Positions 1 through 54,331 of a stretch of 64,000 nt of DNA are shown in pieces (the stretch's first letter is position 1; each line of letters begins with the position of its first letter). Source of the stretch: Callorhinchus milii (Eukaryota); the NCBI RefSeq assembly GCF_018977255.1, contig NW_024704742.1, positions 137,702,001-137,766,000 on the forward strand. Direction: 5' to 3'. The notes beneath the pieces were generated by a model, which did not search any database, was not told the origin of the DNA, and worked only from the letters and a program-made list of their open reading frames with translations. Position numbers and translations under genes: made by a program.

Positions 1-1366
1 GATCCGCACTGTAAGAAGGTGATGGAAAAGGTGCAATTTAGATTTACTGTGATGTCCCCAGGGATTTAGGGGTTTGAGTTACTAAAAGAGATTTGAGAGG
101 ATTTGGCTTTTTTTATGAAGCTGAGAAGGTTAGGAGTGACCTGATAGAGGTCACAAAAAGTCAAAGAGTCACAACAATAGATTTTTCCTCTCATCAGCCG
201 GTCAGCCACAAGAGGAATAAATCTAAAAACATCATTAAAAAAAAGGAAATTAGGAGGAGATTAGAAAGATTCTCTCTACACAGAGACGATGGGATTGTGG
301 AATCAGCTGCCACAAACGGAGTTGAGGCAAAGTCTGTCAATAATAATAATAATCCTTGCATTTGATATAGCACCTTATCACGTCTTCGAGACGTCTCAAA
401 GCACTTCACAGAATATACTGTAAAGTGAATTGACTGCATATTTTGTTGGCAAAACTCAGCAGCCTATTGTGCCCAGCAGTGATTCACAAACTGTCGGGGA
501 TTGAGTGACCAATTACTTATTACTCACGGAAAAGTGATCTGCCAATCAACTAACAAGCGGGTTCCTACTTACTGCGAGATAAACAGAGCGGTGTGGAGCA
601 AGGCAACTTGCACAACCTTTCACACTATCCGGAGTGCTCAAACCACTGAGCTACAGGAACCCACAGGCAAGTCTACCAAAGGCAATTGGATTGATGTTTG
701 AAGAGGAGAAATATTAAACGGTTTGGGGGTGGGACATAGAGTGATCGGGACAAAAGGTGTGACTGAGCAGCTTGTGAAAAATATAACACTTTTTAAAATG
801 GAATGAACGGGCGGATGGGCTAGTTTGTGCTATAAGAATACCGTAATTTTAACTGTCAGAAACTGGATGAGAATAAAGAGCTGCAGTGAGAACTAGCGCC
901 AGCACAGACACTTTGTTTGCGGTCAGCCGGGTGTCTGATAACAGAGGAAACTCATCACTGCGCTGAAGAGTCTTCAAACCAAACTACTCAGAATTCCACC
1001 TATATCTGGAAATGTCTGTGTGTCTGGAATGAGATGTGCACTTTGTCCCCAGAGGGACGTATCCTGCTCACCTCATCACAGACAGTATTCTGCGCAGGAT
1101 GGGAAGATCACCGATTCAACAACAAATTGTATAGCACCTTTCATGTCGGGAGGACATCAAGAGAGGGGTGAGGGGAAGGGACTGTGGGATGGAGTTCCAA
1201 AGGGTGAGGCAAACACTTACACTGTGGGGCTCAGTGAGTAACACAGTTCTGTTCAGTTTAGAGACGGGAATCTTATTTGCAGGAGATATCACATGACTGT
1301 AATTATTCCAGTAAAAGGTAAAGCAGTAATTAAAGCCAGTCAGGTTTCTGATTGGAAAGTACGTAC

Positions 1367-1418
1367 GGAAGGCAGAGGCTGACAGGACCAGGGTACAGAG
1401 CACAGCTCCCAGCATCAT
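1367..1418 (-). CDS. Leader (signal peptide) exon of a Siglec-15-like gene continuing left of the window
   Basis: ATG at 1418 reads [17 protein letters not shown] plus 1 nt, then the donor GTACGT (52 nt, phase 1). It is nearly identical to the leader exons of genes A, B and C. Confidence 0.8.
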
Positions 1419-2999: not shown

Positions 3000-4260
3000 G
3001 GGAGTGTGGAGGGCAGTGGGGGAAGCAGGGAGATCAAAAGAAATGTCGAAGGGGAGGGTTGAGTTGGGTCTTGAAGTTGGCAAGGGAGGGGGCGATGCGG
3101 AGGGACTGCGGGATAGAGTTCCAGTGGATGGGGTCAGAGTGGAAGATGTCCCGCCTGCCAATAGTGGCGCAGGTGAGGCGAGGAACATGATGCAGGGCAG
3201 AGCCCACTGAACAGAGGGAGTGAGCAGTATGGTAGGTGGTTAGAAAGTCACAGATGTGGGGGTGAGCAAGACCATGGAGGGTTTTAAATGTGAGGACCGG
3301 GGTCTTGAACTGTATCCTCTGGGTGATGGGAAGCCAGTGGTGTTAGGCGAGGATAAGATCATGGAGATTAGTGCGGGAGAGGATACAGGCTGCAGAGTTC
3401 TGGATGATCTGCGGCTTATGGAGGGAGGAGTTGGGGAGGCCGAGAAGCAATGGGTTTGCAAAGCCAAGCCACGATGTAATGAAAGCGGCCTGCGGGGTGA
3501 GACAGTGGCGGAGCCGGGCGATGTTGCAGAGGTGGGAAGCCAGAGCGGGTCGTGATGCATATGTGGGGTAGAAAGGAAAGTTTGGCTCAAACAAGACCCC
3601 GAGGTTCCGTGCTGCTCAGTGAGGTGGAGTGTGCAACCATGGATGGTGGTGCTGTCAGCGCCTGAGGTGAGGAGGTGCTGACGGGAGCCAATCGGGAGAG
3701 CCTCGGTCTTGTTGACGTTTAACTGAAGGAAGTTCGCTCTCATCCAGGACTTGATGTCTGACAGACATTCTGTCAGGACAGCAGTGGTCCTGGAGTTCAG
3801 GGTGGAGGCAGAGAGGTTCAGTTGGGTGTCATCTGCATACGTGTGGAAGTTGACCCCATGTCTGCGGATGATGTCACCGAGAGGGGGCATATAGATATTG
3901 AAGAGGAGGGAACCAAGGACAGAGCCCTGAGAAACACTGCACGAGACGGTGGGGATCCCAGAGGAGAAGCCGTTTGTGGAGATGAAGAGGAGGTGGTGTG
4001 AGAGGTACGATCTGAACCAGTCAAGGACAGAGCCATGAACGTTGAGGTGAGAGGAGGCAGTGGATGAGGACAGAAAGGTCGATGGTGTCGAAGGCAGCAG
4101 AGAGGTCAAGGAGGACGAGTAGACAGAGGGAGCCCTGGTCCCAGATAGACAGAGCGTCATTTGTCAGTTTGTCACTCCGACCCTCCTTGCCCTCCGCCAT
4201 CCCTGATCCCAATAACTCTCCTGCACGGATCTAAATGCCTGACTGTCCAACCTCTTGGGA
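3000..4260 (-). mobile_element. Degenerate L2 3' fragment (RT)
   Basis: VSQGSVLG and YADD motifs in ORF 3240-4160; duplicated at about 37200-38520. Confidence 0.85.
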
Positions 4261-5396: not shown

Positions 5397-5446
5397 CTAT
5401 ACAGAGCTCCTTCTTTTCTTGGCCTCAGGATGGAGACGCCTTGAAT
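5397..5446 (-). CDS. Gene A terminal cytoplasmic exon (no Tyr motif)
   Basis: A polypyrimidine tract ending TCATAG precedes AT TCA AGG...GTA TAG, in frame after the phase-1 TM exon. The same exon occurs at 40008-39959. Confidence 0.7.
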
Positions 5447-8400
5447 CTATGAGTGAAGAAAAAGAATGAGATCATGTTTCAGCCAAACAAACACTGTTAT
5501 TGGGAGTCACGGGTTCCCATGTTCTCAAAGGCTCAACAGAATCGCAAAATTCCACCTCATCTCAGCCCTTGAGATGTTTTGCCCTCAAATATCGGATGGT
5601 CCAGACTAGGGGTAAATCCAACAACAACTTGTATTCACACAGGACACGTCTCAGAGCTCTTTATCGTGGCAAGGTTGGATGCCAAGCAAAAGGGGCAGCC
5701 AGAGGAGTGGGCTATGAGGAGACGAGACCTTCCCCATATTCATGTAGGTCTCAAGGTGGGATTTCTCCGAGGGTCCTGGCCAGCAATCCTCCAGATGAAT
5801 TGGTCGCCCACATCACTGCTGGGTGTGGGGGATTTGCTGCGCACTGACTGGCTGCAGCGTTTGCTGACAGAAACACAGTCACTACATCTGACAAAGCACA
5901 TTAGTTATAATAATGCTTCCATTGGATGCAGCGCCTCATCACATGGTTAGACATCTGAATACTCTTCACAGGATGTTTGTTACTGTGAAGTGTAGTGACT
6001 GTGCTTGTTTTGGAATAATAATAATTCTTGCATTTGATACAACGCCTTATCATGATTTCAGGATATCTCAAAGTGTTTCAGGAGATTTTACTGGAAAATA
6101 GTGACTGTGTATTGTGTTGTGTATTATAACCTCTGGAGTGGTGTTCAGTGGTTTTGTATTTAAGATACAAACAGCAAAGGATTGACAAACCTTGTGTTTT
6201 ACAGAGGAGAACGATCCCGATCACCAACAGAAAGAGACATTTAGCTGCTGGCATCAGCCACAGCATCACAGTGATGAAGCTGCCATCACTCTGTGGTCCA
6301 GGTGCGAGGATGTCTCGGGAGTCCCTGCCCTGTGTGTTCTCAGCTACACAGCGGTAAGTTCCCCTCAGCCTCGGGCCCCGGATCTCCCCCACGGTTTGAT
6401 GCTTGTCCGGTACATGTGTGACTGGCGTGTGGTTGGTGTTAATGGGCAGCGTGTTATGCTCGGGGTCGATCCATGTGATGTTGGCCGGTGGTTCCCCCTC
6501 AGCCGAGCACACAATGTCACCTCCGGCCACGAGGGACAGACTCAGGATGACGGCCGGAGCTTCAGGTATAAAGAAACACAGAGATATTCAAACCAAACAA
6601 CTGTCCCCATCGTGTCTGTGCTGGTGCTCACTCCCCCATTGGAGCTCTCTACTCAAACCCCATTCCCTGCTCTCTCCCCATCGTGTCTGTGCTGGTGCTC
6701 GCTCCCCCACTGGAGCTCTCTACTCTAACCACATTCCCTGACTGGAGCTCTCTACTCTAACCACATTCCCTGCTCTCTCCCCATCGTGTCTGTGCTGGTG
6801 CTCACTCCCCCACTGGAGCTCTCTACTCTAACCCCATTCCCTGCTCTCTCTCTCCCCATCGTGTCTGTGCTGGTGTTCGCTCCCCCACTGGAGCTCTCTA
6901 CTCAAACCCCATTCCCTGCTCTCTCCCCATCGTGTCTGTGCTGGTGCTCACTCCCCCACTGGAGCCCTCTACTCAAACCCCATTCCCTGCTCTCTCCCCA
7001 TCGTGTCTGTGCTGGTGCTCGCTCCCCCACTGGAGCTCTCTACTCTAACCACATTCCCTGCTCTCTCCCCATCGTGTCTGTGCTGGTGTTCGTTCCCCCA
7101 CTGGAGCTCTCTACTCTAATCCCTTCTCTTTTCTTGTACATGTTGTTCATAGTGTTCCGCTACAACCACTTTACAAAATATTTTTTTAATATTCGAGTCT
7201 ATTCGAGTCTCAGGGCCTCAGGACGTCTTTTTGTTGGGAAAGACGCTATGCAAATGTAATTTGTATCAATTGTATCAATGTAATTGATAAAATCTCAAGA
7301 GAGTTTTGTGTGAAGAAAATGCTTCAGCCCATTTGACCTCAAAGTTCCCAATCCCCCCCCCACCCCACTGTCGATGTTACAGCATCGACCTCTTTCTGTA
7401 ATAAGCCCCAGTGTCCGGCCTCAACCACCCTTCCTGGTAACTTCCTGTCATTAATTACCTTCTGGACAAAGAAATACTTCCGGGTATCTGTTCTTATTTT
7501 GACCATCACAACCCTGACCCTGTGCCCTCGTGACGTATCTGAGAGCAATGACGTATTTCTTATCAAATCCGTGAAGAAAATCAGTAACTTCTACACCGTG
7601 TGCTGTCGGGTAACTAAATATTGCTGTTCTGATGGCAGTGCAGTGTCTGGGATGGTAACCAGTCTGTCTTATTCCGACACTGATGGACCTGGTCGTGTGT
7701 TTAAGTTTTGCTTTACTCGGAGGGTAATCAGGGATTGGAACAGGTGGCCAGGAAGGGTGGCTGAGGCCAGGACACTGGGACTCATTTAAAAAGCAGTTGA
7801 TACTGTGATTGGGAGTGGGAGGGGCGGTGTTCTGTAAGGATAAGACCAGATGGACCTTCTTCATTCAGACCAATCCTGGACTTGTGAAAAACACATTATT
7901 TATTGTTGGGAAGCTTCCCGCTGCTTGTCCAGCGAGGATCACCCTGGGCTTTAGCTTGTAGGGTTAACAGGAGACAAGTGGGAAGAAACCCTGTCCCCAG
8001 TAACATACTAAAGTCTCCTCCTTTTGAAACCATGTTTCTTGTGCTAATTAACACATGAGGAACAGGGTAAGGAATGAGACAAACATCGTCTGTAGCATTG
8101 CGTCAGTGATGACCTGTTCATTCATCCTTTTCCGTGTCCCACAGAGACAAGAGATCTCTTACCAACAACCTGCAGCCGTGACATGTCCTGTGTCACCTGG
8201 TCCACAAAAAACATGACGTGTACGTGACAGAAATACCGTCCGGTGTCGTTTAACTCCAGGCCCCTGATCTTCAGGGAAGCGTCTCCATCTCCCACATTCC
8301 TGACCAGCTTGTAGCGATTTCCTTCATTCACTGTCTCTGACTCCCTGGAGTTGGTGTGGGCGGTGAGGCCAAGAGTGTAATTAAACACCAGCTGCCCATG

Positions 8401-11400
8401 TGGACTCCCTCTCCTCCAAAGCACTGTGACTGTGGCACGATTCTGGTATGTGTTGGGGATGGTGAAGGAGCAGGGCAGTGTGGCATCACCTCCCTTGGTA
8501 CCAGTCACTGACCGGAGCTTCTCTTCATGACCTGAGACAGGAACAGGATTGGAATAGTGCAGAGCAGTCAGTGTGACAGAGTACATGTTACACACTGTAA
8601 ATCCTGGATATGTTACCTGGTCTTCATGGCACCATCTCCCTCAGGCCTGTGCTCCTCACTCACCCTCTATGAGCCTATGTCCAACACAATGTCTCACACA
8701 CAAAACATGGTATTTTTATAGGACCAATAACATGATTACTGGCAAGTGTAGTGACTGTTTTGCAGCGAATTTACTCAGATGAAGGACCCCCAATGCTTAT
8801 GAAGGCTCTGGGATGCTGCCCTGCATGAGGAGTGCTGTATAAATGCACGTTATCGTTGTTGTTGAACAATCTAATTCAGATGGAGGTTTGGTGGTGTAAA
8901 GAAAATCCCTCCTCATGTTTTGGGGCAGTCGGTTTCCTGATACGTACAGATATCTGTCACCGTTGTTAAGAGTATCTAAACCAGAGAGAGACTTCCACAT
9001 ATATATCCACTCTGAGTATGTATTTCAGAGAGTATTATGTTTGGGGCAATTTGGAGTTCAACCAGCGAAAGCAGCATAATAATAATCATAATAATACCTG
9101 GATTTGATATCTCGCTATTGAGACATCTCAAAGCGCTTCACCAAATATACTGTCCAGTGAATTGACTGTACATCTTGTGGGAGAAATACACCAGTCAATT
9201 GTGCCAGCAGCGATCCAACAACCGTCATGGATTGAGAGAGCAAATTTTTAAAAAATTATTTTTGGAGAGATTTTTGCCCCCAGAGGTGATCCACCAATCG
9301 ACTAAACTACCGGCTTCCTACTTACTGCGAGGTAAACAGAGGCGTGTATAGCAAGGAAACTTGCTCAAGGTTTCTTCCTGCCCAGGAATCAAACCCAAGT
9401 CCTCTCGCTTGTGAGGCGAGTGCTCTAACCACTACACTACAGGACTCCACAGCACAGTTGGCCAGTGACGGCACTGTGTGGCAAGCTTCCTGCTGCTTGT
9501 GTAGATCTGTGGTGTTATTGAGCTGAGTGGGAATGGTCGCGCCCAGTGACTGGTCTGCCAATGAGGCTGATGCCAAATCAGCAGTGCCCTGGAGTACTGC
9601 GACCGCCTGGCTCAGGAACCAGACTAGAGACCCCCACAGAGGGTTGACTCCTGCCCGACGTCCTGTGGCCTTGTATGTCACTGTGGAGCCAGTCCCTGCT
9701 TTACACCGGCTTTTTTGTGGTGGGAGAAACATACAGGGCAGTTTGTGACCTGCCAGCCACCTTGATGTTCTCGAGATCCATTGCCGCGTCCCAGGCTTAC
9801 TGATCACCAGCTGCTGAATCCAGGTCCTCATGTGAGGGGCCTCGGCAAATAGACAACCCACAGTGAGGCCGCCTCAGCCTCCAGGTGCTCAGTGACAGGT
9901 CAGTGTACAGCACAGCCCTCCCTCCCTGCAGCCGCTCACTCACTGTCACCTGTCAGCTCCCTGCTACACACCGTCCATCACAGGGACCACTGGCTCTCTA
10001 TTGCCCGTCCTGGGACGGGACACTTCCCACTGACTCCGGCCCCAGTGAGGAACGTCACGTCTCATTCCCACTTCCCATCGTTCCTCACCTGTAACAATTA
10101 GACGGGTTCCGTGTCCAGTTTCAAACTTTCCGTCCTCACCCTGGAGCTCCACACAACAGGACCATAGCTTATTATTGTCCTCTCCCCTCAGTTGGTTTAT
10201 CTCTATTGTTGCGTCGTTCCTCCTCGGGTTCCCAATCACTCGGTGTCGTTCTCCCTCGTTTACATCAATGACATTTTGATACTTTCGCTGTGAATCCGGC
10301 CCATAATTTGTATATTTAATATACACAGGACCAGTCCTTCCTGCCTTCCACATGATGGTGATGTTCCCTGTGTATCTGGGGTGAGGGTGAGTGAACTTGC
10401 AGTACACGGTGACCGGTGACCCTAACCTGCCGGTCACTGTATCGGGGGTCTCCATCGTCCAGCCATTCCTACTGAGCCCTGTGAGGACACACATGGTGTA
10501 ATGTGAACCAGAACACAACATAAAAGCAAACAGGTAACACTGAGCTTGTACAAGAGCTTGGTTAGGTCACAGCGGGGAGTAATGTGGATAGTATTGCGAT
10601 CCCCACTGTAAGAAGGATAAAAAAGTGATGGAAAAGTTGCAGCTTAGATTCACTGCGATGTCCCCAGGGTTTAGCGGTTTAAGTTTGTAAAGGAGATTTG
10701 AAAGGTTGGGACTTTTTTAGCAAACTGAGAAGGTTAGGGGTGATCTGATAGCGGTCGCTAAACCTCAAAGAGTCACAAAAGATTTTCCTCTCATCAGCCA
10801 GTCAGTCACAAGAGGAATAAATCTAAAACAATCACAAAAAATTAACTAAGAGAGGGTTAGAAACCTTCACTTTACACAGAGAGGATGGGATTGTGGAATC
10901 CTCTGCCACAGACGGAGTTGAGGCAAAGTCCGTCAATAATAATAATGAGTCTTGCATTTCATACAGGTTTGATCACATCTTCGAGATGTCCCAAAGTGCA
11001 TCATAGAATACACTGTAAAGTGAATTGACAGTATATTTTGTGGGCGAAACGCATCAGCCAATTGCGCAGCTGTGTCTCACAAACAGTCGTGGATTGAACG
11101 ACATATTTATAATTTTTTTTGAAGGAATTATTCCCCACGAAAATGTGAACCGCCATTCAACTAACAACCAGGTTCCTACTTACTGCTAAGATAACAGAAG
11201 CGTGTGGTGAGAGGAAAATTGCCCAACTTATGCTAATCGAACCCAAGTCTTGCCTGCGAGGCGAGTGCTCTAACCACTGAGCTACAGGAATCCACAGTCA
11301 AGTCCATAAAAGGGAATTGTTGTTCGAAGTGTATTAAATTAAATGGTGTTGGGGGGAGGGAGAGTGAGCGAGACACAGGGTGGGACTGAGCATCATGTGA

Positions 11401-12042
11401 ACAAAATAAAACTTGTCAAAATGGAATGAACGGGCGGAGCGGCTGTTTTCATGCTATAAAAATACCACCATTTTAACAGTCAGAAACGGGAGTAGAATAC
11501 AGAGCTGCAGTGAGAACCAGCGCCGGCACAGACACTTTGTTTGCGGTCAGCCGGGTGTCTGATAACAGAGGAAACTCATCACTGCGCTGAAGAGTCTTCA
11601 AACCAAACTACTCAGAATTCCACTTATATCTGGAAACGTCTGTGTGTCTGGAATGAGATGTGCACTTTGTCCCCAGAGGGACGTATCCTGCTCACCTCAT
11701 CACAGACAGTATTCTGCGCAGGATGGGAAGATCACCGATTCAACAACAAATTGTATAGCACCTTTCATGTCGGGAGGACATCAAGAGAGGGGTGAGGGGA
11801 AGGGACTGTGGGATGGAGTTCCAAAGGGTGAGGCAAACACTTACACTGTGGGGCTCAGTGAGTAACACAGTTCTGTTCAGTTTAGAGACGGGAATCTTAT
11901 TTGCAGGAGATATCACATGACTGTAATTATTCCAGTAAAAGGTAAAGCAGTAATTAAAGCCAGTCAGGTTTCTGATTGGAAAGTACGTACGGAAGGCCGA
12001 GGCTGACAGGACCAGGGTACAGAGCACAGCTCCCAGCATCAT
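5397..12042 (-). CDS. SIGLEC15-like: Gene A: Siglec-15-like activating-type receptor (leader-V1-V2-C2/TM with Lys-short tail), 409 aa
   Basis: Exons 12042-11991, 10478-10089, 8531-8163, 6559-6191 and 5446-5397 all have AG/GT boundaries and phase-1 junctions, totalling 1230 nt in one frame. V1 motifs CKFTHPHPRYTG and GNPRRND, C2 motif CSAEGEPP and [10 protein letters not shown] resemble Siglec-15 as I recall it. The tail is [16 protein letters not shown]. Confidence 0.85.
6191..6559 (-). CDS. Gene A C2-set Ig plus transmembrane exon (TM Lys codon 6240-6242)
   Basis: CTGAAG acceptor; APAVILSL...[14 protein letters not shown]...GTYRCVAEN...[29 protein letters not shown]; GTTTGT donor; 369 nt. 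Confidence 0.88.
6603..7125. repeat. About 71-bp minisatellite just upstream of the C2 exon acceptor
   Basis: Units recur at about 6608, 6679, 6782, 6857, 6928, 6999 and 7070. Copy number differs in genes B (about 1), C (about 4) and D (about 5). Confidence 0.9.
8163..8531 (-). CDS. Gene A second V-set Ig exon (V2)
   Basis: TCTCAG acceptor and GTAAGA donor, 369 nt. V-set hallmarks: ATLPCSF, VLWRR, DASLKI, DTGRYFC. Confidence 0.9.
9090..9450 (-). mobile_element. tRNA-derived SINE with L2-like 3' tail
   Basis: Head GGAGTCCTGTAGTGTAGTGGTTAGAGCACTCGCCTCACAAGCGAG with A/B boxes and an (ATT)n tail. Many copies, e.g. about 285-660, 4320-4640, 10930-11300, 14100-14400, 29820-30145, 31630-31990, 43430-43790 and 52750-53105. 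Confidence 0.75.
10089..10478 (-). CDS. Gene A N-terminal Siglec-15-like V-set exon (V1; F-strand Arg replaced by Cys)
   Basis: CTCACAG acceptor and GTGAGG donor, 390 nt. WTMETP...YCKFTHPHPRY...MWKAG...GNPRRND...WSCCVELQG. Confidence 0.9.
11991..12042 (-). CDS. Gene A leader exon
   Basis: [17 protein letters not shown] plus GTACGT donor. It splices in frame to V1 (C|GG = Arg). Confidence 0.85.
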
Positions 12043-12460: not shown

Positions 12461-13203
12461 ATGGAAGAAGCAAACAAAATTGGGGGAGGGATCAGAAGGA
12501 AATGACCCAAGCTGGACCGAAGTCACAAATAAGGAGAATATAAGTGGTCAGGGACCTAATACAATTATAGAACAGAAGGGTGAAAAGACTTTCAAAAATA
12601 AAATGAGAGGAGCAACGAATAATAATGAATGAAACTGTCTGTACAGCAATGTTCACAGCATCCGAAATAAAACAGGAGGACTGAGGCAGTAATTCGTAGT
12701 GAGGAAACAGATATATTTGGGATTACTGAAACGTGGCTACAGAAAGACCAGGACTGGCAATTAAACATTGCAGGTGTAACATATTTAGATAGGATAGAGA
12801 TGGGGTAAAAGGGCCATGGAGTAGCTGAACATGTTAGGGATAACATCATGGCAGTAGAAAAAAGGAAATCGGGAGATCAAAACCAGGGGCCATCAATATA
12901 AAATTGTCACAAGTGGATTAAATAGGGAAGTTAGACGTTTGCAGAAATGTCTTCACACACAGAGTAGTGAGAATGTGGAACATCTGCCACAAGGAGTTGT
13001 TGAGGCTAATAGCATCGATGTATTTAAGAGGAAGCTGGAGAGGTACTTGAGGGAGAAAGGAATAGAAGGTGATGCTTGATGGCTTAGTTGAGGAAGAGCA
13101 GGAGGAGGCTCATGTGGAGCTAAACACCGGCATAGACCAGTTGGGCTGAATGGCCGGTTTCTGTGCAATATATTCTAATGTTTTCTAATGTATTCTAACA
13201 CAA
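12461..13203 (+). mobile_element. CR1-clade LINE fragment (endonuclease N-terminus plus 3' tail) upstream of the gene A leader
   Basis: Reads as ...NVHSIRNK...GITETWLQK.... The empty site is seen at about 32850. An inverted copy lies at about 55840-56525. Confidence 0.7.
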
Positions 13204-14473
13204 TTTGCTTCCACCGTCTCCAAAGGGAACCCTCCATAAGTTACTACTCTCTCACTGAAGTAGTGAACAAATGTTTGAATAAGCGTTACATTTCTGTATT
13301 TGATGCAGAATCTGTAATGTTAGAAAGTTTCAAAGGTCTTCAACAGGTACTGACTGTGTTCGTGGACAAACACAGCAACCACTTTGCACACAGCCATATC
13401 ATCTGAAAGAAATAAAAAGAGTTTTTTGTTAAAGCGCTGAATAAGGTGAAGGACAAAACAGAGATGAGGTTCAGGGCAGTTCTGAGATAAAGTGTGTCGG
13501 AGCTGCTGAAGGGAAAGGTTGAGAGTTTGCACGTGTCGGCACACGCTGGAGACAGTAGATATCATGAGTCGGCAAGAACAGTGATCAGAAGAGCGCTGAA
13601 TTTTGATGATTGTGGGTGGATTAAAAGCAGGAAGGGTGGAATTTCAGAGGGAATCCATATGGAATTAGTTGCAGTTTAAGACAGTTACTGAGGAAAGAGA
13701 TGTGGCTGTGAAAACAGGTTTTAATGAAAACATCAAACACAAGAAGGGAAACAGATAGCTAAGAAGGTGAGCAGGGTAAAAGGGAAGAAAGAAAGTCACG
13801 GTGAAGTGAAGAGCAGAACTTCTTCAAGGTAGGCATTCCTAGAAGACAATTAGTCTACAATTCATCTGGTTGATTGTCGCGCAGGAAGCCGGGAGGAACT
13901 CGCTTCTCTTTTCCATCAGTGTCGAGGGATCTTTAATGTCAGGCAAACAGGTCCTTGGTTTAACGTCTCATCTGAAGGACGGCACCTGGATGGTGAACAC
14001 CACAACCCGCTGACCCAGAGGCGAGAGTGCTACTGACTCACCAGACTGACACCTGATGAGTAATGGGTGCACAGAGGCAGCTGTGGGAGAAGACGAGGAG
14101 AGATAATGACAATTTATTATAATATATTTTGTGGGTGAAACGCGGCAGATAATTGCGCACATCAGTGTCCCACAAACAGTCGTGGATTGAGTGACCAAAT
14201 CAAAAAAGAGAAATGTTTTGAAGGGATTGTTACCCCCAGAAAAGCGATGCACCAATCGACTAACAACCGGGTTCCTTGTTACTGCTGTGTAAACACCGGC
14301 GGTGGAGTTAGGAAACTTGACTACCGTTTGGGTCGGCCCGGAATCGAACCCGGGAACTGTTGCTTGCGACGAGTGCTGTCACCACTGAACTACAATACTC
14401 CATTACTGTCTCACAGGTTCGCCTGACTGCGGCCACATTAACATACACCACCGAGCCATACGTTCACAAGCAT

Positions 14474-14479
14474 TTTATT
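14474..14479 (-). terminator. Candidate poly(A) signal of gene B (AATAAA)
   Basis: Occupies the homologous position to 4715-4720 within a diverged shared 3' segment. Confidence 0.4.
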
Positions 14480-14579
14480 CAGTCAATTTCAGAACAGAAT
14501 ATTTACTGTGGAGATCAGGTTCAGTAGGAAAAATAGTGAATAAGACAATCTGATTCAATGCCTTGGAATCAACGATGCA

Positions 14580-14960
14580 GTGGGTTTGGGGGGAGAGTGT
14601 GTGAGGGGGGAGGCAATGAGGTTGGTATTGAGGAGGGGGACAGTGAGGCATGTCAGTGAGGGGGTAGTTCGGTGGTCAGTCAGTGGGGCAGCGAGGAGGG
14701 GGTAGTGAGGGGGGGGCAGTGAGGGGGGGCAGTTAGGGGTTGATAATGAGGGGGGGCAGTGAAGGGGGGCACAGTGAGGGGGGGCGGTGAAGATGGGGCG
14801 GTGAGATGGGAGCACTGAGAGGAGACAATGAGGGGATAGTGCGGGGCGGTGAGGGGTGGGCAGTGATGAGGGGCAGTGAGGGGGCAGAAATGAGTGGGAA
14901 GTGATTGGTCCAGTGAGGGGGTGGCAATGAGGGGGAGCAGAGTGGTGGCCAGTGAGGTGG
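14580..14960. repeat. G-rich low-complexity tract (CAGTGAGGGGGG-like units)
   Basis: Repeated CAGTGAGGGG words. Confidence 0.7.
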
Positions 14961-16153: not shown

Positions 16154-16206
16154 TCACTGCTCAGCTGATCTCCCATTCGATTTGGTGACAACAGCATAAA
16201 TCACAT
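16154..16206 (-). CDS. Gene B terminal exon with ITIM ([17 protein letters not shown])
   Basis: Strong acceptor TTTGTTTCTCTTCCAG. The phase-1 reading gives a V-x-Y-x-x-V ITIM and then TGA. Confidence 0.78.
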
Positions 16207-19200
16207 CTGGAAGAGAAACAAAATGGAGTCAGGACATGTCCCACCACTTGCTGAGAGCTCTGATATAACGTGTGACCCACGTTAAAGTCTATTAGAACTT
16301 TAATATAACTTTTCTAAGGTCCAAATGTCTCAAAGCGAATCACTGTCAAGTGTAGTGACTGTGTATTTTATCAGCAAACCTGGCGGCTAATTTGAATTCA
16401 ACAATGTCCACATACAGCCAAGAAATGGGTGACCAATTTTATTTGGAGAATTGTTGGCCCGGACACCAGGAGAGAGAAATTCCCTTCCCTTTTCCAACAG
16501 CACATTGCATTCCAGACACAGGGAAATTTCCATGTGGAGGTGACATATATATGTGGAATTCTCATTCTGGTTTGGATACTCTTGAGAAGGTGATGTTGGT
16601 TGACCCAAAAAACCTCAATAGATACAGACGGGATCTTGGTTTAACATCGCAATTAAAGGACAGCACTTCTGACAATGTAGCGCTCCTCCCAGTACTGCAC
16701 TGGAGCATCAGCCTGGACTGTGAGCTCGAGGGCCCTGATTTAGGGGCTCGAATCCCCAACCTCCTGACCCAGAGCCAGAGTGCGAGCAGCGAGGCGACTG
16801 GATACACAATAAACCAGAAAAGGCTGACAATACTCACTGTCATCAGAGGCTCTGATGGTGGAATTTGCGTACACTTGGGAAGGAGAGAGAGACAATTATT
16901 AGTAAATAATTTCAATATTGATAACATTTCCATCAGAAATGGGAATCAACTTCACAAAGAAACTATGACACTGGTTATCAAACGGAGTGCGTATATACTG
17001 TACCCGTGGAAATACAGAGAGTGGAGTGCAATGTCTGAAGCTCAGGCCCCAAAATGGGACAGAGTACGAGGAATGAACAGTGAACTGGGGATTGGTGCTA
17101 CTCCAACGCAAGTCACTGGGATCTGATGCTACTCTAATGTCAGGCCCTGGGGATTGGTGAGCACCAACCACAGAGCTAAGACTTCAGGTCTAATCTGTGC
17201 AGTGTAGTGACTGTGTGTCTGTTGGTGAACGCAGCAGCCAATTTGCACTCAGCAATGTTCCACAATCAACCGGGAAGTTTTATAACCAATTTAATCCGGA
17301 CACCCAGAGAAACTCCCTTCTCTTTTCCAAGTGCCGCGGGACATTTAACATTCACCTGAACAGGGACAGATGAGACCTCAGTTTAATATCTCATCTGATG
17401 GACGACGCCTCATACAATGCAGTGTTCCTCCTGCACCGTGCAGCCTGGATTATGTGAATAAAAGACCCAATGTGGGGCTTGAACCCACAATTATCTGACT
17501 GAGGTGAGAGTTGCTGCCGCCTGTGCCAGGCTGAGAGTTGACCCCGGACAGGAAGGGGAACGCAGACTCTTGTCGGCTGAGAGGCAAGGCAATGCTGGCT
17601 CCCCCCGTGTGATACGTTTCAAGCCAGTCAGGAAACTTGGCGTCTTGTTCGACCCTTAACTGTCCTTTCTACCCCATATCCATGCCATGACCCACCTTGG
17701 CTTCCCCCACCTACGCAACATTGCCCAACTCCCCCACTGCCTCTCCCCTCAGACTGCCGACAACTTCATACACACACTCATCACCTCAAGGCTCGACTAC
17801 AGAAAATACCTCCTTGTTGGCCTCCAAAACTCTTCCCTCCACAAGCTTCAGATCATCCAGAACTCTGCAGCTTGTGTCTTCCCCACAGCAGCTCCATAAT
17901 CCAATCATCCTCACCCACGCCCTCCTACATCTCTGACCTGCTAACACCCTATCAACCTGTTTGCTCCCTCCATTCAGCAAACTCCGGCCTGCTTCATGTC
18001 TCCAACCAGATGCCCCCCTCCATTGGCGGCCTGGCCCTACCCTTTGGAACGCCATCCCACAATCCCTTCTCCTCGCTCTCTCCACTGCCTCCTTCAAGGC
18101 CCGAATCATGACTCTCCTTTTCGTGCGTGACTTCAGCCGCCCACCTACATCTCTGTGACCCACGTTAAAGTCTATTAGAACTTTAATATAACTTTTCTAA
18201 AGTCCAAATGTCTCAAAGCGAATCACTGTCAAGTGTAGTGACTGTGTATTTTGTCAGCAAACCTGGCGGCTAATTTGAATTCAACAATGTCCACATACAG
18301 CCAAGAAATGGGTGACCAATTTTATTTGGAGAATTGTTGGCCCGGACACCAGGAGAGAGAAATTCTCTTCCCTTTTCCAACAGCACATTGCATTCCAGAC
18401 ACAGGGAAATTTCCATGTGGAGGTGACATATATATGTGGAATTCTCATTCTGGTTTGGATACTCTTGAGAAGGTGATGTTGGTTGACCCAAAAAACCTCA
18501 ATAGATACAGACGGGATCTTGGTTTAACATCGCAATTAAAGGACAGCACTTCTGACAATGTAGCGCTCCTCCCAGTACTGCACTGGAGCATCAGCCTGGA
18601 CTGTGAGCTCGAGGGCCCTGATTTAGGGGCTCGAATCCCCAACCTCCTGACCCAGAGCCAGAGTGCGAGCAGCGAGGCGACTGGATACACAACAAACCAG
18701 AAAAGGCTGACAATACTCACTGTCATCAGAGGCTCTGATGGTGGAATTTGCGTACACTTGGGAAGGAGAGAGAGACAATTATTAGTAAATAATTTCAATA
18801 TTGATAAGATTTCCATCAGAAATGGGAATCAACTTCACAAAGAAACTATGACACTGGTTATCAAACGGAGTGCGTATATACTGTACCCGTGGAAATACAG
18901 AGAGTGGAGTGCAATGTCTGAAGCTCAGGCCCCAAAGCTGGGACAGAGTACGAGGAATGAACAGTGAACTGGGGATTGGTGCTACTCCAACGCAAGTCAC
19001 TGGGATCTGATGCTACTCTAATGTCAGGCCCTGGGGATTGGTGAGCACCAACCACAGAGCTCATACTTCACAGGTCTAATCTGTGCAGTGTAGTGACTGT
19101 GTGTCTGTTGGTGAACGCAGCAGCCAATTTGCACTCAGCAATGTTCCACAATCAACCGGGAAGTTTTATAACCAATTTAATCCGGACACCCAGAGAAACT

Positions 19201-22200
19201 CCCTTCTCTTTTCCAAGTGCCGCGGGACATTTAACATTCACCTGAACAGGGACAGATGAGACCTCAGTTTAATATCTCATCTGATGGACGACGCCTCATA
19301 CAATGCAGTGTTCCTCCTGCACCGTGCAGCCTGGATTATGTGAATAAAAGACCCAATGTGGGGCTTGAACCCACAATTATCTGATTGAGGTGAGAGTTGT
19401 TGCCGCCTGTGCCAGGCTGAGAGTTGACCCCGGACAGGAAGGGGAACGCAGACTCTTGTCGGCTGAGAGGCAAGGCAATGCTGGCTCCCCCCGTGTGATA
19501 CGTTTCAAGCCAGTCAGGAAACTTGGCGTCTTGTTCGACCCTTAACTGTCCTTTCTACCCCATATCCATGCCATGACCCACCTTGGCTTCCCCCACCTAT
19601 GCAACATTGCCCAACTCCCCCACTGCCTCTCCCCTCAGACTGCTGACAACTTCATACACACACTCATCACCTCAAGGCTCGACTACAGAAAATACCTCCT
19701 TGTTGGCCTCCAAAACTCTTCCCTCCACAAGCTTCAGATCATCCAGAACTCTGCAGCTTGTGTCTTCCCCACAGCAGCTCCATAATCCAATCATCCTCAC
19801 CCACGCCCTCCTACATCTCTGACCTGCTAACACCTATCAACCTGTTTGCTCCCTCCATTCAGCAAACTCCGGCCTGCTTCATGTCTCCAACCAGATGCCC
19901 CCCTCCATTGGCGGCCTGGCCCTACCCTTTGGAACGCCATCCCACAATCCCTTCTCCTCGCTCTCTCCACTGCCTCCTTCAAGGCCCGAAACATGACTCT
20001 CCTTTTCGTGCGTGACTTCAGCCGCCCACCTACATCTCTGCCCTCCCTCACCACATCCCTGCTCCCTCCACGCTCGGGTCCTGATCCCCGATTCTCCAGC
20101 GACGTGCGACGTCCTCCCGTCTTGAAAGACACTTCACAAATGTAATTTTGTTGTTGTTTCTTACCTGAATCTGTTTGCCGGGCCGGTGCTGGGGTAACCA
20201 CACTGTAGATCACAGCAGCTTCGTCTGTCAGAGACACAACAGTCAGCTCCTTCTCCAGGTCTCTGCAGCTTCCCCTTTGCCACATTCTACCTTCCCTGGT
20301 ATTTATTTATTATTGTTTTGTTTTGGAGGGATTATTATTAGGCTCTGTGTGGAGTAAGGAAACTTGCCCAAGGTTTCACCCTCTGCGTGGAATTGAACAC
20401 AGGTGTCTCATTTGCAAAGCGAGTGCTCTAACCACTGAGCTACAGGACTCCAGACCATTCAGAATACTGCAGCTCATGTCCTTCCCCGCACCAGACTCCA
20501 TGATACCATCACCCCCACTCTCGCGCAGCTCCACTGGCTCCCAAACCCTCATTGGATAGAATTCAAAATCCTCATCCTTGCCTTCAAGGCCCTCGACAGA
20601 CTTCTGCCCTCCTATATCTCTGTGACCCGCTAACTCCTTATCAAACTGTCCACTCCCTCCACTCAGCAGGCTGCGGCCTGCTCCACATTCACCGCTCAGC
20701 CCGCCCCACCATCGGCAGCCATGCCTTCAGCCTCTCACCTACCCTTTGGAAAGCCATCCCACATTCCCTTTGCCGTGCTCCCTCCCTTGCCTCCTTCAAG
20801 GCATGTCTCAAGACTCTCTTTTCGACTGTGTGTTCGGCCACTCCGGCCCTCCACCATCCCTTACCCCAAAACCCCAGGTCCAAATCCCTGACTGTCCAGC
20901 GCCTTGGGACACCCTCCCGACGTGATACAAATGCAGTTTGCATTGTATTGTAAACCTGACAGCCAATGTGCATTCAGCAATGTCCCACAAACAGCTATGA
21001 AGTGGGTGACCAATTATGTTTGGAGCATTGTTGGCCAGGACATCAGGAGAGAGAAAGTCCCTTCTCTTTTCCAATATCACATTGCATTCCAGACACAGGG
21101 ACATTTCCATCTGACTGAGAGGTGAGAGTGCTGCCAACTGAGCCAGGCTGACAGTTAACCCCGGACAGGAGAGGGAACGCAGATCTCTGTCGGCTGAGAA
21201 CCGACACAATGCCGGCTCCGTCCCCGTGTGATACGTTTAATTACCTGAATCTGTTTGCCGGGCCGGTGCTGGGGGAAACACACTGTAGATCACAGCAGCT
21301 TCGTCTGTCAGAGACACAACAGTCAGCTCCTTCCTCCAGTTTCCCCTTTACCACATTTTACCATGTCCCAGGGTGGACGTAGCCTCTATAAGGCTCCCTC
21401 TCAGCCGTCCCAGGACAGAGCCCTGAGGTTCCCTCTCACTACAGCACCAATTGTACAATCAGAACATTTATACCCATTTGGAGGCCCTTTGACTGTGAGG
21501 CTCTGAAAGGCTCTCCCTTTAGCCCCACTCCCCTTTTCCCATTGGCTTTCCAAATATTATTGGTGACTTGGTAGGTGCATTTTGCCGACTCCCAGGTCCG
21601 GGGCACAGCTGTGAGCTGTATATTCTCCGAAATGAGGTAAGCAGGATGAGTCTCTCCGTGGAGACAGACAGAGTGAGCCATTCCATATATGGAAATTTCC
21701 ACGTGTAGGTGACTTACATGGGTGGAATTCTCAGTCTGGTTTGGATGCTCTGAAGCACAGTGATGGGTTTCTGTGTGTGAAGACACCCAGAGCCAGAGGT
21801 GAGAGGGTCACTGACTGAGCTCGGCTGAGACCCAGTGACGGGATATTGAAAGCACGGGGTCAAAATTGTGGCATCGCAAATCGAGACAGAACAGTTACCG
21901 TCTCCTGCAGGCGGCTGAGGTCGGACCATGTCATTGCTAACCATTTGATGACTGAAAAAAAGAGAAAACGTTTTATATTGTACATTTTATAGAGGTTGGA
22001 AGATAAAACCTTATTTGTAATAATGCTTACATTTCATTCAGCGTCTTTCACGTCAGAAGGACAGACGTTCATAACACTTCACAGTGTAGGAGTCAGTAAT
22101 TAATATGTTAAATAATATCTTAAATGATATTTGCGATGTTTATATATTTGAAACATATGATCAATCTCATATGAGGGGAGTCGGTTGTGATGAGCTTTGT

Positions 22201-25200
22201 AGAGTGGAAATAAAAGCCTATTTATAAGCAACAAACTGTTTTCATTCCTTATCAGTCATTTTCTCATGGAAATATGTTCTGCTGCTGGAGAGAGCCTGTG
22301 TTGCATTAGTTTTTACAAGGGAACCATCTTGCAAAAGTGAAAGGTCGCCTCATCAACAGCTCGAGGATGGAGTGGAGGGAGAGGTGAGAGCAAAGATGGT
22401 CAGCAACAACCCATGGCATAAACTGAGATCGATTCGAAGGAGAAAAAAGAAATTGGAACTTGGAGTCGCGAATCATATTCCAGCTTCTAAAGAAGGAAGA
22501 TCAAGATTGTGATTTAAACAACTCTAAATGTGCAATAATACCTGGATATGTTTGGGTGATATCCAACTGGGAACCGTACAATAATACTTGGATCCCTTTT
22601 GATGGACATATATTTGGATTAAAAAGGATACATTAAAATGGACGTTACATTGGACATTGCTCCTCTATCTCTCCCACACGATGTGATTAATAAGTCTTAA
22701 ATCGTTGTGAACTACAGGATACGTCAGCATAATTCGATGCATTTTAGTTACTTATAACCATTATTAATCTGAATTAATAAACCTTGGTTAATTGCATAAC
22801 ATTTTTGTCAGTCCTTACTTCGCCACATGGTAAATAAATTAACCCTCACAACAGGATTTAGTGTAAAGTGTAGTGATGGCGTATTTTGTAAGAATGCACC
22901 AGACAATGTGCACACAGGAACTTCCCCACAAACAATCATGGAGTGAATGATCAAGTTTATTGAGGGGATTGATGGCCAGGGCACCGGGAGACACCATCTT
23001 CTCTGAAGGGTCCAAACCTCAGCTCGGCCACAACAGTGTGTTTAGTTCTGGGCAGCGAGTTACAGGAAGGATATAAAAGGCCGAGCCTGGGGGACGAGGG
23101 GACCATAGGAACAGTTGAATAGGAAGGTCTTCAGGCACGACCTGAAGATGGAAAAGGCAATGTGGTGGGATAGAGGAAGAGTGTTCCAGGGTTTTGGAGT
23201 TTTTGGCTGAAAGCTCGGCCACCAACGGTGTAACGGAGAAAACGAGGGACATGCTGAAGCCAATCGAGGGGAGGCAGGGGCGGTAAGCGATTCGGGAAGG
23301 TCGGGAGGTGCCAGAGCATGAAGGGATTTGAAAACGAGTCTGAGGATCTTGAAATCGATCCGATTAGCAATGGGGAGCCATTGACTGGCTTGACTGCTGT
23401 GATGGGGGATACAGAGCTTAGTACAGGTGAGTAAGTGGGCAGCAGAGTATTGGATCAGCTGGATCCTGTGTATGATGGCACTGGAGAGAGCGGCAAAGAG
23501 GGCGTTTGAAAAGGTGAGTCGGGAGGGCAGAGCTAAACCACATTGCAAGGGCTCGAGTATGGAGTGGAGGGAGAGGTGAGAGCAAAGATGGTGAGCAACA
23601 ACCCATGGCAGAGCTTTGGCAAGGAAGGGCAGGTTGGAAATGGGTCGGTAATTTATGTGTTTGAAAGGTGCTTTATAAGGGCAAGTTGTTGTTTTACACT
23701 TGACACAACCTCTTTGTGTGTGTGTTTGTGTGTGTGTGTCTGTCTGTGTGGGAGTGGGTGTTTGTCTGTCTGTGTGTATTTGTGTGTGTGTGTGTGTGTG
23801 TGTGAGTGAGTGTGTGTGCGGGCAGTGTGAGTTGGGGTGAGTTGGTGTGTTTCTATGTGTGTGTGAGTGTGGACTCTGTGCTGCTGAGATAGCAGGAGCT
23901 GAGTGGGAAGAATCGCTGCTCTCAGTAGTGCAGAGTAGACACCAGTTGGTCATTTGGGGACGGTGTCTCTTTGGGCTTTTCTGGCTGCAAAGTTAGATGT
24001 TTGGCAACGGAATGCGATGGTCTCGAGTTCGGTTCAGTGCTGCGAAGGTCTGCAGTGGGTCTGCACTTGGAAGGGCAGAGCAGTCACTGGGGGCAGGGAA
24101 TCCTCCCACTCAGCTCCTGCTAACCCTGCAAGTCAAAGCCCTAACAGTGAGGGTGGTCCAAGCTGGAGAGGGAAGCAGGAAGCTTTCCAGATACAGGGCT
24201 CAACAGCAATTAGGAACTTGGAAGTGGATGTAACAGTGAAGGGATTAGAAAGACGCTCTCACCTCTCTGAACACTGACAGCAATGTCCGACACCATCACC
24301 TAAAGAGACCAAAGAAAGATGAGAGATTGATTTAGATGGTTTGCTGATGACGTTCGTTAGTGCACATGTTATTATAGGGAAAGACTTGTGCAAACCCTCC
24401 TCTTCCTGTTGTGTGGTGTAACCATGGTTACTGAAGCAGGAAGCCAGGCTCATATCACCATCCAAAGCCATTAGCTCCACTGTGTCTGTGCTGGTGCTCT
24501 CTCCCCCACTGGAGCTCTCTACCCTAATCCCATCCCTGCTCTCTCTCCCCATGGCGTCTGTGCTGGTGCTCTCTCCCCCACTGGAGCTCTCTACCCTAAT
24601 CCCATCCCTGCTCTCTCTCCCCATGGCGTCTGTGCTGGTGCTCTCTCCCCCACTGGAGCTCTCTACCCTAATCCCATCCCTGCTCTCTCTCCCCATGGCG
24701 TCTGTGCTGGTGCTCTCTCCCCCACTGGAGCTCTCTACCCTAATCCCATCCCTGCTCTCTCTCCCCATGGCGTCTGTGCTGGTGCTCTCTCCCCCACTGG
24801 AGCTCTCTACCCTAATCCCATCCCTGCTCTCTCTCCCCATGGCGTCTGTGCTGGTGAAGGAGAGATTGATAGCTCCAATAATTGTTACTGGGCACTTTGT
24901 GTGAGGATAATAATAATAATAAACCTTGCATTTGATATAGCGCTTTTCACGTCTTCTCGGCATCTCAAAGCGCTTCACAGAACACACTGTAAAGTGAATT
25001 GACTGTACATTTGTGCAGCCAATTGCGCACAGCAATGTCCCACAAACAGTCGTGGATTGATAATGACCAATTTATTATTGTTTTGTTTTGGAGGGATTAT
25101 TATTAGGCTCTGTGTGGAGTAAGGAAACTTGCCCAAGGTTTCGCCCTCTGCCTGGAATTGAACCCCAGGTGTCTCGCTTGCAAAGCGAGTGCTCTAACCA

Positions 25201-32453: not shown

Positions 32454-33559
32454 CGTCCCTCACTCAGGACACACTCCTTCCCCGCGCACGTCTGCCTCGC
32501 ACTGGCACAGCTGGTCACCCTTCTCTTTCCTTCCTCCTCTCGTTCTGTGGTCAACACCAGAGCTCCAACCCCCACATCCGCTTTGTTCTGATGCTCCGTC
32601 ATGTTTCTCCCCAACACTAACCCGCCCTCACCCCCTGTCACAGTAACTGGGTGACTTTTAATGCTCTATTACATTTCACACCCTTTTTATATTCGCAGCG
32701 TTTACATGGGAACACAAGAATTTGCTGATGAAGACAAAGGTCCATCTTGTTTGCCTTCCACCATCCTGGCAGTCGCTTGACGTGTCATGTCCCAGTGTAT
32801 CCCAAGATATTATTTTTCTAGCAGAACTCTAATTTGTTCTTGAAACAGACAACTCTCTTTGCTTCCACCATCTTCCTCAGGAACCTTCCATAAGTTTCCT
32901 ACTCTCTCACTGAAATACCGATCAAATGTTTTAATAACCTTTCCATTTCTGTATTTGATGCAGAATTTGTAATGTTAGAAAGTCTTGAAGGTTTTCAACA
33001 GATCGTGACTGTGTTCATGGACAAACACAGCAGCGAGTTTGCAAACAGCGATATCACAAAAACAGCCAGAAGGTAAATGAACCATTAATCTGGTTGATTG
33101 TCGCGCAGGAAGCCGGGAGGAACTCGCTTCTCTTTTCCATCAGTGTCGATGGATCTTTAATGTCAGGCAAACAGGTCCTTGGTTTAACGTCTCATCTGAA
33201 GGACGGCAACTCTGACGATGTACAGCTCCCCCTGTGCTGGAGCATCAGCCTGGACTCTGAGCACAATCCCGACATGGGCACGAACCCAGGCTTTAGACCC
33301 AGAGGCGAGAGTGTGACTGACTGAGCCAAACTGACTTCCTGCGTTATGTTAAGGTCAGAGAAGTGGAGCTGCTGTCCATGTGATTTGTTGGTTTACAGCA
33401 CAGAAGCCTTCCCCCCCTCTGCTGTCTGTGCTGGTGATCGCTCTTTACTGGGGCTCTAGCTTCTCTTTTCCATTAATGTTGAGGGATCTTTAATGTCAGG
33501 CAATTGGGTCCTTAATTAGGGACGGCGTTGTTGGTACTTAGAAAATCGTAACATGATTA

Positions 33560-34959: not shown

Positions 34960-35545
34960 AACATCAAGTCTTGGATGAGAGCTAACTACAGTTGAACGTC
35001 AACGAGACTGAGGCCCACCTGATTGGCTCCCGTCAGCGACTCCACACCTCAGGCACTGACAGCATCTTCATCCAAGAATATACACTCCACCTCACTGAGA
35101 CAGTCTGGAACCTTGGCATTTTGTTTGACCCTCATCTGTACTCTCTGCCCCACATCCGAGACATGACACACTCTGCTCTCCGCATCTCCTCAACATCCCC
35201 ACTCCGCCACTGTCTCATCCCTTCAGGTCGCCGAAATCTTCATCATCCATTTATTTCATCTAGGCTTTACTATGCCAACTCCCTGCTTGATGGCCTCCCC
35301 AACTTTTCACTCCACAAACTGCTGATCATCCAGAATTCCGTAGTTCGTGTCCCTTCCTGTACCTGGCGCTGTGATCCTATCACCCCAATGCTCACCCGGC
35401 TTCACTGGCTCTACATGCCCCAGAAGATAGAGTTCAAAATCCTCGTCCTTGCCTTCAGGGCCCTCCACGGCCTCACTCCTTCCTACGTCTGTGACTACTA
35501 ACCCCATATCAACTTGCCCAATCCCTCAGCACAGCAGGCTTCGGC
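34960..35545 (+). mobile_element. L2 fragment abutting the distal leader duplication
   Basis: ORF 34992-35501 matches the L2 RT C-terminus. Confidence 0.8.
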
Positions 35546-35587
35546 AGTAATTAAAGCCAGTCAGGTTTCTGATTGGAAAGTACGTAC

Positions 35588-35639
35588 GGGAGGCAGAGGC
35601 TGACAGGACCAGGGTACAGAGCACAGCTCCCAGCATCAT
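35588..35639 (-). CDS. Extra intact leader exon upstream of gene B (distal alternative first exon or orphan)
   Basis: Intact ATG, signal peptide and donor, with no V exon of its own between it and gene B. Confidence 0.55.
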
Positions 35640-45900: not shown

Positions 45901-46133
45901 GGGAGGAGCCTGGGCCTACTGACCCAGGTACTTAAACTCGACGCCGGAGCGAGTGCAGCCAGTCGGGGAGCGGCAGCAGGACAGCGCGGGGAGGAGCCTG
46001 GGCCTACTGACCCAGGTACTTAAACTCGACGCCGGAGCGAGTGCAGCTAGGCAGTGGAGGGAGGTGTGGGGGCGGAGCGGGGGAACTGCGACGTCATAGA
46101 TTAGTTTTCAGGTGAGTGCGCGCGCACAAAAAA

Positions 46134-54306: not shown

Positions 54307-54331
54307 NNNNNNNNNNNNNNNNNNNNNNNNN
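54307..54331. other. Assembly gap (25 N)
   Basis: Run of N. Confidence 1.

Follow-up and report, generated by a model that had tools for sequence, protein, structure and literature searches.

We analysed a 64,000-nucleotide stretch of the elephant shark genome (Callorhinchus milii, MU249832.1 137,702,001-137,766,000 of GCA_018977255.1; hereafter the window), in which the immunoglobulin-type receptor genes all lie on the minus strand. The explanation that we consider likely, taken as a whole, is that these genes belong to a lineage-specific cluster of Siglec-15-like paired receptors. The arginine that is essential for sialic-acid binding would have been changed to cysteine by transitions at a CpG in genes A, C and LOC103188801, and this change would not be dictated by the type of transmembrane (TM) segment that the receptor carries.

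The essential arginine and its replacement in the window

The site lies in the F strand of the first V-set domain (V1) and is read from three codons of the window:

10153-10155, minus strand: gene A, codon TGT (Cys) at the position of Siglec-15 R143, plus-strand ACA reverse-complemented
30850-30852, minus strand: gene B, codon CGT (Arg, the ancestral state), plus-strand ACG reverse-complemented
44311-44313, minus strand: gene C, codon TGT (Cys), plus-strand ACA reverse-complemented

The codon context is TCC TGT CGT GTG in gene B and TCC TGT TGT GTG in genes A and C, and the change is therefore a C-to-T transition at a CpG. The in-frame translation of gene A V1 around the site is KLWSC-C-VELQ. 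An earlier note on this DNA had named these positions, residues and type of mutation, and all of them hold when the codons are read again and translated. V1 sequences with CCVE recur in protein models from an older C. milii assembly (P0021-P0023, A-like; P0002, LOC103188801-like), so the cysteine is not a one-off assembly error. The region is rich in duplications of 95-100% identity, among them a perfect array of 14 x 88 bp next to gene C, and these would favour a sequencing or assembly artefact. However, three separate loci are affected. We regard the artefact as extremely improbable and rejected it on the ground that the older-assembly models show the same cysteine.

Both sequence and fold point to a Siglec-15-type site. 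When the 130 residues of V1 were compared with the PDB by phmmer, the best match was human Siglec-15 (7zoz_A, E = 8e-16, residues 6-130), and the Pfam V-set score was 31 bits at a cut-off of 26. In an AlphaFold2 model of gene A V1 (predicted local distance difference test score 90.3), C108 and C109 lie in the middle of the F strand (residues 104-114). The best PDB fold match of this model in Foldseek was again the Siglec-15 V domain of 7zoz_A (template-modelling score 0.83/0.86, root-mean-square deviation 2.3 Å), and the next matches were CRIg/VSIG4 (0.65-0.71). V1 is homologous to the V-set domain of the Siglec-15 subfamily by phmmer, Pfam and Foldseek alike, though the ectodomain, laid out as leader, V1, V2, C2 and TM, departs from the subfamily plan of one V-set and one C2-set domain.

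The residue in question aligns with R143 of human Siglec-15 (WSCRVE and YFCRVE, respectively), with the GNPRRND and FTHPH motifs in common. In the human protein, R143 forms a salt bridge with the carboxylate of sialic acid and the R143A substitution abolishes binding, with further contacts made by W44, Y87 and R153/Y154/E155 (PMC10264397). In the alignment to 7zoz, V1 of genes A, B and C keeps Trp44 and has K-F-E for R153-Y154-E155, and the Tyr87 position falls in a 2-residue loop deletion. The F-strand arginine, a hallmark of Siglec-15, is absent from A and C (Cys, TGT) and present in B (Arg, CGT). The alignment, the Foldseek match and R143A (PMC10264397) agree with the earlier note that the F-strand arginine is the essential one. 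Its reference to human SIGLEC12 is also correct, as Siglec-XII has R122C at the equivalent arginine and does not bind sialic acid (PMC6288428).

The likeness to human Siglec-15 (PDB 7ZOZ; R143, TM Lys274, DAP12-coupled) extends over the whole V-set domain and includes the C-R-V-E motif, the B-F disulfide and the aromatic-Glu pair of the G strand in addition to Trp44 and GNPRRND, and genes A and C carry a lysine at the matching TM position. Unlike human Siglec-15, the shark genes have an extra V-like domain (V2, with CHVHV) ahead of C2, do not have the C95-C104 loop disulfide or Tyr87, form a multigene cluster with members that bear immunoreceptor tyrosine-based inhibitory motifs (ITIMs), and in A and C have Cys for R143. 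Every V2 domain carries His (CHVHV) at the position equivalent to the arginine.

Neighbouring genes in the window have opposite signalling modules. Genes A and C have a TM segment with a DAP12-type lysine (Lys-TM), which matches the TM pattern of C. milii Siglec-15, and a 16-residue tail. In gene B, the TM segment is uncharged and is followed by three ITIM-like motifs (VIYSVF, VIYSVV and VIYAVV), which sit on separate small exons. A Lys-TM is lacking in B, D, E and H. These features are in agreement with the earlier classing of A and C as activating and B as inhibitory. Nucleotide identity across V1, V2 and C2 among A, B, C and D is 94-98%, with 82-90% amino-acid identity in V1. Between activating and inhibitory genes, similarity is lost inside exon 4, exactly at the start of the TM-coding part. 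Near-identical ectodomains with a homology break just before the TM segment indicate a classic paired-receptor architecture. Among three genes, a perfect association of TM type with the residue has a chance probability of 1/3, and is alone statistically weightless.

Residue and signalling type in the cluster and in other vertebrates

The window, its flanks and two more pieces of the same cluster (L001-L004) were scanned exon by exon. The cluster comprises at least ten Siglec-15-like paired-receptor genes, and the genes compared here are:

Gene A (window): activating, Cys
Gene C (window): activating, Cys
Gene G (L003 10001-19301): activating, Arg in all three V1 exons; intact 684-aa open reading frame (ORF), canonical splice sites
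Gene F: activating, Arg; 1-nt deletion in V1
C. milii Siglec-15 proper: activating, Trp
Gene B (window): inhibitory, Arg
Gene D: inhibitory, Arg; 1-nt insertion in V2
Gene E: inhibitory, Arg
Gene H: inhibitory, Arg
LOC103188801 (L002 10001-22746): inhibitory, Cys (TGT); co-linear 12.7-kb gene with ITIMs VIYSEV and VIYAVV

The codon is CGT in 8 of the 11 V1 exons and TGT in the other 3, and both TM types occur in both codon classes. The arginine has been lost in three of five activating genes and one of five inhibitory genes (Fisher two-sided p about 0.5). The rule drawn in the earlier note, by which activating genes have Cys and inhibitory genes Arg, breaks down on the intact gene G (Lys-TM, three times Arg) and on LOC103188801 (ITIM, Cys), so that both combinations which the note itself named as contrary to it occur. 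The pattern in the window is a local sample of a cluster that holds both combinations, and the link to TM type survives as a weak tendency only. A second homologue search, with the gene A protein as query, gave no additional C. milii paralogues.

Three features of these genes are worth recording in their own right. The three V1 exons of gene G are tandem, in frame and about 1.5 kb apart (L003 11220-14590), with canonical splice sites, and two of them are identical. They predict as many as three lectin-type domains in the receptor, and a lungfish relative (P0028) has seven. The second ITIM exon of LOC103188801 (L002 21221-21280) has a Tyr-to-Cys change, VICSVV instead of VIYSVV, which leaves two canonical ITIMs. 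To the right of the window, the single-nucleotide frameshifts of F and D lie at L001 ~7345 and ~21597, and these genes may be pseudogenes or may carry indel errors of long reads or of the assembly.

Members of the family from sharks, rays, lungfish, teleosts and tetrapods were collected with HMMER against 1.8 billion cluster representatives and with two word-based searches. In nine elasmobranchs (Cetorhinus, Pristis, Heterodontus, Heptranchias, Mobula hypostoma, Chiloscyllium, Rhincodon, Leucoraja and Hypanus; P0008, P0009, P0011, P0015, P0034, P0152, P0153, P0154 and P0156), the Lys-TM Siglec-15 orthologue has Leu after the F-strand cysteine, and the C. milii orthologue (XP_007907096; P0006/P0025/P0026) has Trp. 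Every sampled cartilaginous-fish Lys-TM orthologue is therefore without the essential arginine, which contradicts the usual statement that this arginine is conserved across vertebrates. Most paralogues with an uncharged TM segment or ITIMs have Arg (Heptranchias, Leucoraja, Pristis and Narcine), and uncharged-TM paralogues have Gln in two rays, Mobula birostris and Hemitrygon. The Siglec-15 proteins of lungfish, teleosts and mammals are activating and have Arg.

The cartilaginous-fish orthologues (NCBI predicted; Heterodontus, Pristis, Rhincodon, C. milii) resemble genes A and C in their V1-V2-C2 layout, in the lack of the essential arginine and in a homologous Lys-TM (F-I-x-x-x-L-x-L-x-P-x-x-K). 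Unlike in A and C, where a recent CGT-to-TGT change has affected an Arg-type V1, their Leu or Trp is apparently ancient and fixed. The chondrichthyan trend represents only one or two ancient events, and it is contradicted outside the group and partly inside it. A strict relation between the residue and TM type does not hold in the cluster, though a trend in its direction is seen among chondrichthyan orthologues (Leu/Trp).

These comparisons bear on the explanation offered in the earlier note, in which selection would blind the activating members to self sialoglycans and free them for a speculative role as counter-receptors for pathogens, with the inhibitory members keeping the arginine to sense self. 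The residues of A, B and C, the Arg of the inhibitory genes D and E, the Leu or Trp of the chondrichthyan Lys-TM orthologues and the Arg of the uncharged-TM paralogues in four genera are all in its favour, as is the recurrence of the change in the cluster, where R-to-C is the sole V1 CpG transition found in three non-sister copies. However, the intact gene G combines a Lys-TM with Arg in three V1 exons, F likewise has a Lys-TM and Arg, and LOC103188801 carries ITIMs together with Cys, so that the strict form has already failed. The Gln of the two rays and the activating, Arg-bearing Siglec-15 of lungfish, teleosts and mammals also speak against it, and the Leu of the elasmobranchs probably goes back to one ancient event and hence adds few independent cases. 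In addition, the two members of the Siglec pairs 5/14 and 11/16 do not differ in binding (PMC5701461). On balance, we find this explanation doubtful.

A broader version can be proposed for Chondrichthyes, tentatively and with more against it than for it in our judgement. The Siglec-15 lineage could long have been an activating/inhibitory pair with a sialic-acid-blind activating member (Leu/Trp). In the elephant-shark cluster, conversion could re-install an Arg-type V1 in activating genes and selection could remove the arginine again through the CpG (A, C). If this is true, the uncoupling of activating receptors from self sialic acid would be a recurrent, selected outcome, and the textbook conservation of the Siglec-15 arginine throughout vertebrates would be wrong for Chondrichthyes. 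A search of the literature, in a limited library, returned no paper on these elephant-shark Siglec/Siglec-15 genes.

Origin of the cysteine codons and its probable consequence

In a maximum-likelihood tree of V1 ± 150 bp, the TGT copies are scattered: A lies by B/D (97% identity), C with F/H, and LOC103188801 with E/G. A single origin of the three TGT copies as one clade was rejected for the same region (approximately unbiased test, p = 0.00015). Because the three Cys copies are not sisters, the Cys codons represent either about three recurrent mutations at a hypermutable CpG or conversion tracts that are too short to detect. There are 30 possible CpG transitions in V1, and R-to-C alone is carried by three non-sister copies. 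Of the 19 that are nonsynonymous, 16 have no carrier among the 11 copies. This tally suggests that loss of the arginine is at least tolerated and possibly favoured. The literature searched contained no paper relevant to a CpG explanation for the loss of the essential arginine.

For V1, the mean synonymous rate (dS) is 0.077 and the mean nonsynonymous rate (dN) is 0.060, a ratio of 0.78, with many pairs at or above 1. This is in keeping with a ligand-binding domain whose evolution is relaxed or diversifying, and comparable evolution has been reported for SIGLEC11/16 (PMC5701461). Homogenisation is strong in V2 (mean dS 0.017), yet its dN/dS is about 2.2. The V2 changes cluster in one short segment of the G strand, at the exon ends 8163-8215, 28857-28925 and 42489-42557, where variants such as MFISKGSQLDQ and MFMKKEFQLDQ occur and gene A has a 15-bp in-frame deletion (MFFV-----DQ).

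Neutral decay has to be weighed at this point. Genes A, C and LOC103188801 could be redundant and under relaxed constraint, with the hypermutable CpG as the first site to be hit before pseudogenisation. The V1 ratio of about 0.8, with many pairs at or above 1, the frameshifts of the neighbours D and F, the limited NCBI annotation of gene C, whose sole leader candidate is 9 kb away across repeats, and the null alleles that human SIGLEC12 gained after R122C are all consistent with such decay. However, all three genes have full ORFs with canonical splice sites throughout; the arginine is substituted in an otherwise intact ORF in A (409 aa), C (414 aa) and LOC103188801. Trp44 and the K-F-E residues are kept at the predicted contact sites, and the 16 nonsynonymous CpG transitions without a carrier argue that the domain is not drifting freely. 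We consider decay possible but unlikely.

The earlier note had also raised disulfide dimerisation. In a gain of function of this kind, the additional unpaired, surface-facing cysteine would give disulfide-linked dimers or a new ligand specificity. There are 7 ectodomain cysteines in A and C and 6 in B, and in the structural model the residue that follows the core-facing cysteine on the strand would point out to the GFC face. However, a free extracellular cysteine may equally be capped or cause retention in the endoplasmic reticulum, and disulfide dimers are not known from human Siglec-XII, which has the same change. Such a gain of function seems very unlikely to us.

We therefore return to CpG loss of the arginine in a lineage-specific paired cluster. 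This cluster of at least ten receptors combines short-tailed Lys-TM members with uncharged-TM members that have two or three ITIMs, and duplication together with gene conversion would keep the ectodomain exons about 90-97% alike. An ancestral CGT (Arg) would have become TGT (Cys) by transition at the hypermutable CpG in A, C and the distant LOC103188801, with recurrent mutation or short conversion tracts behind the three copies, in a V1 that overall evolves near the neutral ratio. The cysteine would remove the guanidinium group through which the carboxylate of sialic acid is held in a salt bridge. By analogy, A and C may have lost canonical sialic-acid binding with their signalling modules intact, as in Siglec-XII. 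This loss of binding is the best supported reading of the change, because of the analogy with R143A and Siglec-XII.

Several points weigh against this explanation. The receptors of A, B, C, G and LOC103188801 are predicted from gene sequence, and about 52 kb of the cluster (MU249832.1 137,587,466-137,639,548) was left out of the census. The linkage of exons, and hence the reading of B as inhibitory, depends on co-linearity, and the NCBI models LOC103174418 X1/X2 (window 5397-53857) splice V1/V2 of gene B to the Lys-TM exons and tail of gene A. Zebrafish Siglec-15, which bears the arginine, bound glycans poorly ex vivo (PMC7226832), so that lectin activity of gene B is to be taken as a prediction. 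The chondrichthyan trend would also be compatible with a degree of selection tied to the TM type.

As for the annotation, NCBI models across the cluster look chimeric, mixing exons of different paralogues, since a complete co-linear gene exists for each. For example, LOC103188797 (L003 10001-40022) joins the three V1 exons of G to the tail of H, and LOC103188796 (L001 10001-30212) joins the end of F V2 to the TM segment of D.

Both recurrent loss of the essential arginine and pairs maintained by conversion are known Siglec phenomena; what is new here is the lineage and the parent gene. As in Siglec-XII (SIGLEC12, R122C) and great-ape Siglec-5/14, the arginine is replaced in a receptor that is otherwise intact and signalling-competent, and as among Arg-mutated primate Siglecs the change recurs in a fast-evolving Siglec cluster. 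Unlike Siglec-XII, which is inhibitory and CD33-related with R122C fixed in humans, the shark change affects genes of Siglec-15 origin, of both the activating (A, C) and the inhibitory type (LOC103188801). The Siglec-5/14 and Siglec-11/16 pairs are similar in being neighbours whose ligand-binding exons are near-identical and have been homogenised through gene conversion under relaxed constraint, and in that the two members signal in opposite ways (ITIM or charged TM with DAP12). Those pairs keep similar glycan binding, whereas shark A/B and C/B differ at the key arginine, and the shark cluster is much larger and derived from Siglec-15. Arginine loss with conversion-maintained pairing, known in primate CD33-related Siglecs, would thus also occur in a Siglec-15-derived cluster of a chimaera, and the same evolutionary dynamics would have arisen independently near the base of the jawed vertebrates. 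Potentially, the natural Arg/Cys pairs on near-identical ectodomains (A and B/D differ at about 10 of 130 residues) could be used as reagents for the ligands of Arg-less Siglecs.

Gene structures and repeats of the window

Genes were assembled from exons found by tblastn, and every junction was checked:

5397-12042, minus strand: gene A, activating type, 409-aa ORF, all splice sites GT/AG
Gene A exons, minus strand: leader 12042-11991; V1 10478-10089; V2 8531-8163; C2 and Lys-TM 6559-6191; tail and stop 5446-5397
6191-6290, minus strand: part of gene A exon 4 that encodes the Lys-TM; the exon ceases to resemble the inhibitory genes just before it, and the equivalent in B is 25587-25677
16154-32453, minus strand: gene B, inhibitory type, predicted 482-aa ORF, all junctions GT/AG
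Gene B 5' exons, minus strand: 32453-32402; V1 31175-30786; V2 29240-28857; C2 and uncharged TM 25946-25587
Gene B 3' exons, minus strand: 24299-24263; 21951-21899; VIYSVF 21304-21245; VIYSVV 20224-20165; VIYAVV and stop 16206-16154
39959-44636, minus strand: gene C, activating type, junctions GT/AG; 414-aa ORF if joined to the leader 53857-53806
Gene C exons, minus strand: V1 44636-44247; V2 42872-42489; C2 and Lys-TM 41135-40767; tail 40008-39959
53806-53857, minus strand: leader exon, sole candidate for gene C, 9 kb upstream across a tandem and an inverted repeat; in NCBI the first exon of LOC103174418
57028-61189, minus strand: 3' part of the inhibitory-type gene D, whose V1 (Arg) is outside the window, to the right
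Gene D exons: C2 and uncharged TM 61180-60803; cytoplasmic ITIM exons near 58171-58106 and 57093-57028
1365-1418, minus strand: leader exon of the inhibitory-type gene E, whose V1 has Arg; the remainder of E lies beyond the left end of the window

An NCBI model of 409 aa spans the same stretch as gene A, and for gene C the NCBI annotation gives a 146-aa fragment only. The last ITIM exon of gene D was not found in the exon scans.

Two near-identical leader exons lie upstream of gene B (35586-35639 and 32402-32453), because a segment of 0.5-1.3 kb has been duplicated (32171-33458 and 35544-36453), and one of the two is presumably an orphan. The 3' region of gene B contains a 1.9-kb tandem duplication (99%; window 16271-20040). 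Upstream of gene C, the array of 14 x 88 bp (44818-46047, 100% matches) starts about 180 bp from V1. The homology of C with A and B stops exactly at this array, which parts C from any nearby leader and either has expanded very recently or is an artefact of the assembly. A 2.5-kb inverted repeat (97.3%) pairs window 47048-49593 with 50010-52557. A 2.1-kb inverted duplication (97.7%) pairs 12492-14611 with 54426-56525 and ends the homology of D with B at 56525. There is a run of N at window 54307-54331.

Mobile and satellite sequences are also found among the genes. A 307-aa ORF with a YADD reverse-transcriptase motif (3243-4163, minus strand) is probably a fragment of a long interspersed nuclear element, and copies of it lie near 26713-27931, 37197-38396 and 62202-63424, in introns and intergenic parts of the cluster. 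Sequences resembling short interspersed nuclear elements derived from transfer RNA occur as well, such as those at 30100-30150 and 31960-31990. Several genes have a repeated minisatellite of about 72 bp, which is probably non-coding, in the intron that follows their C2-TM exon (~24300-25000, 6750-7120 and 60080-61660).

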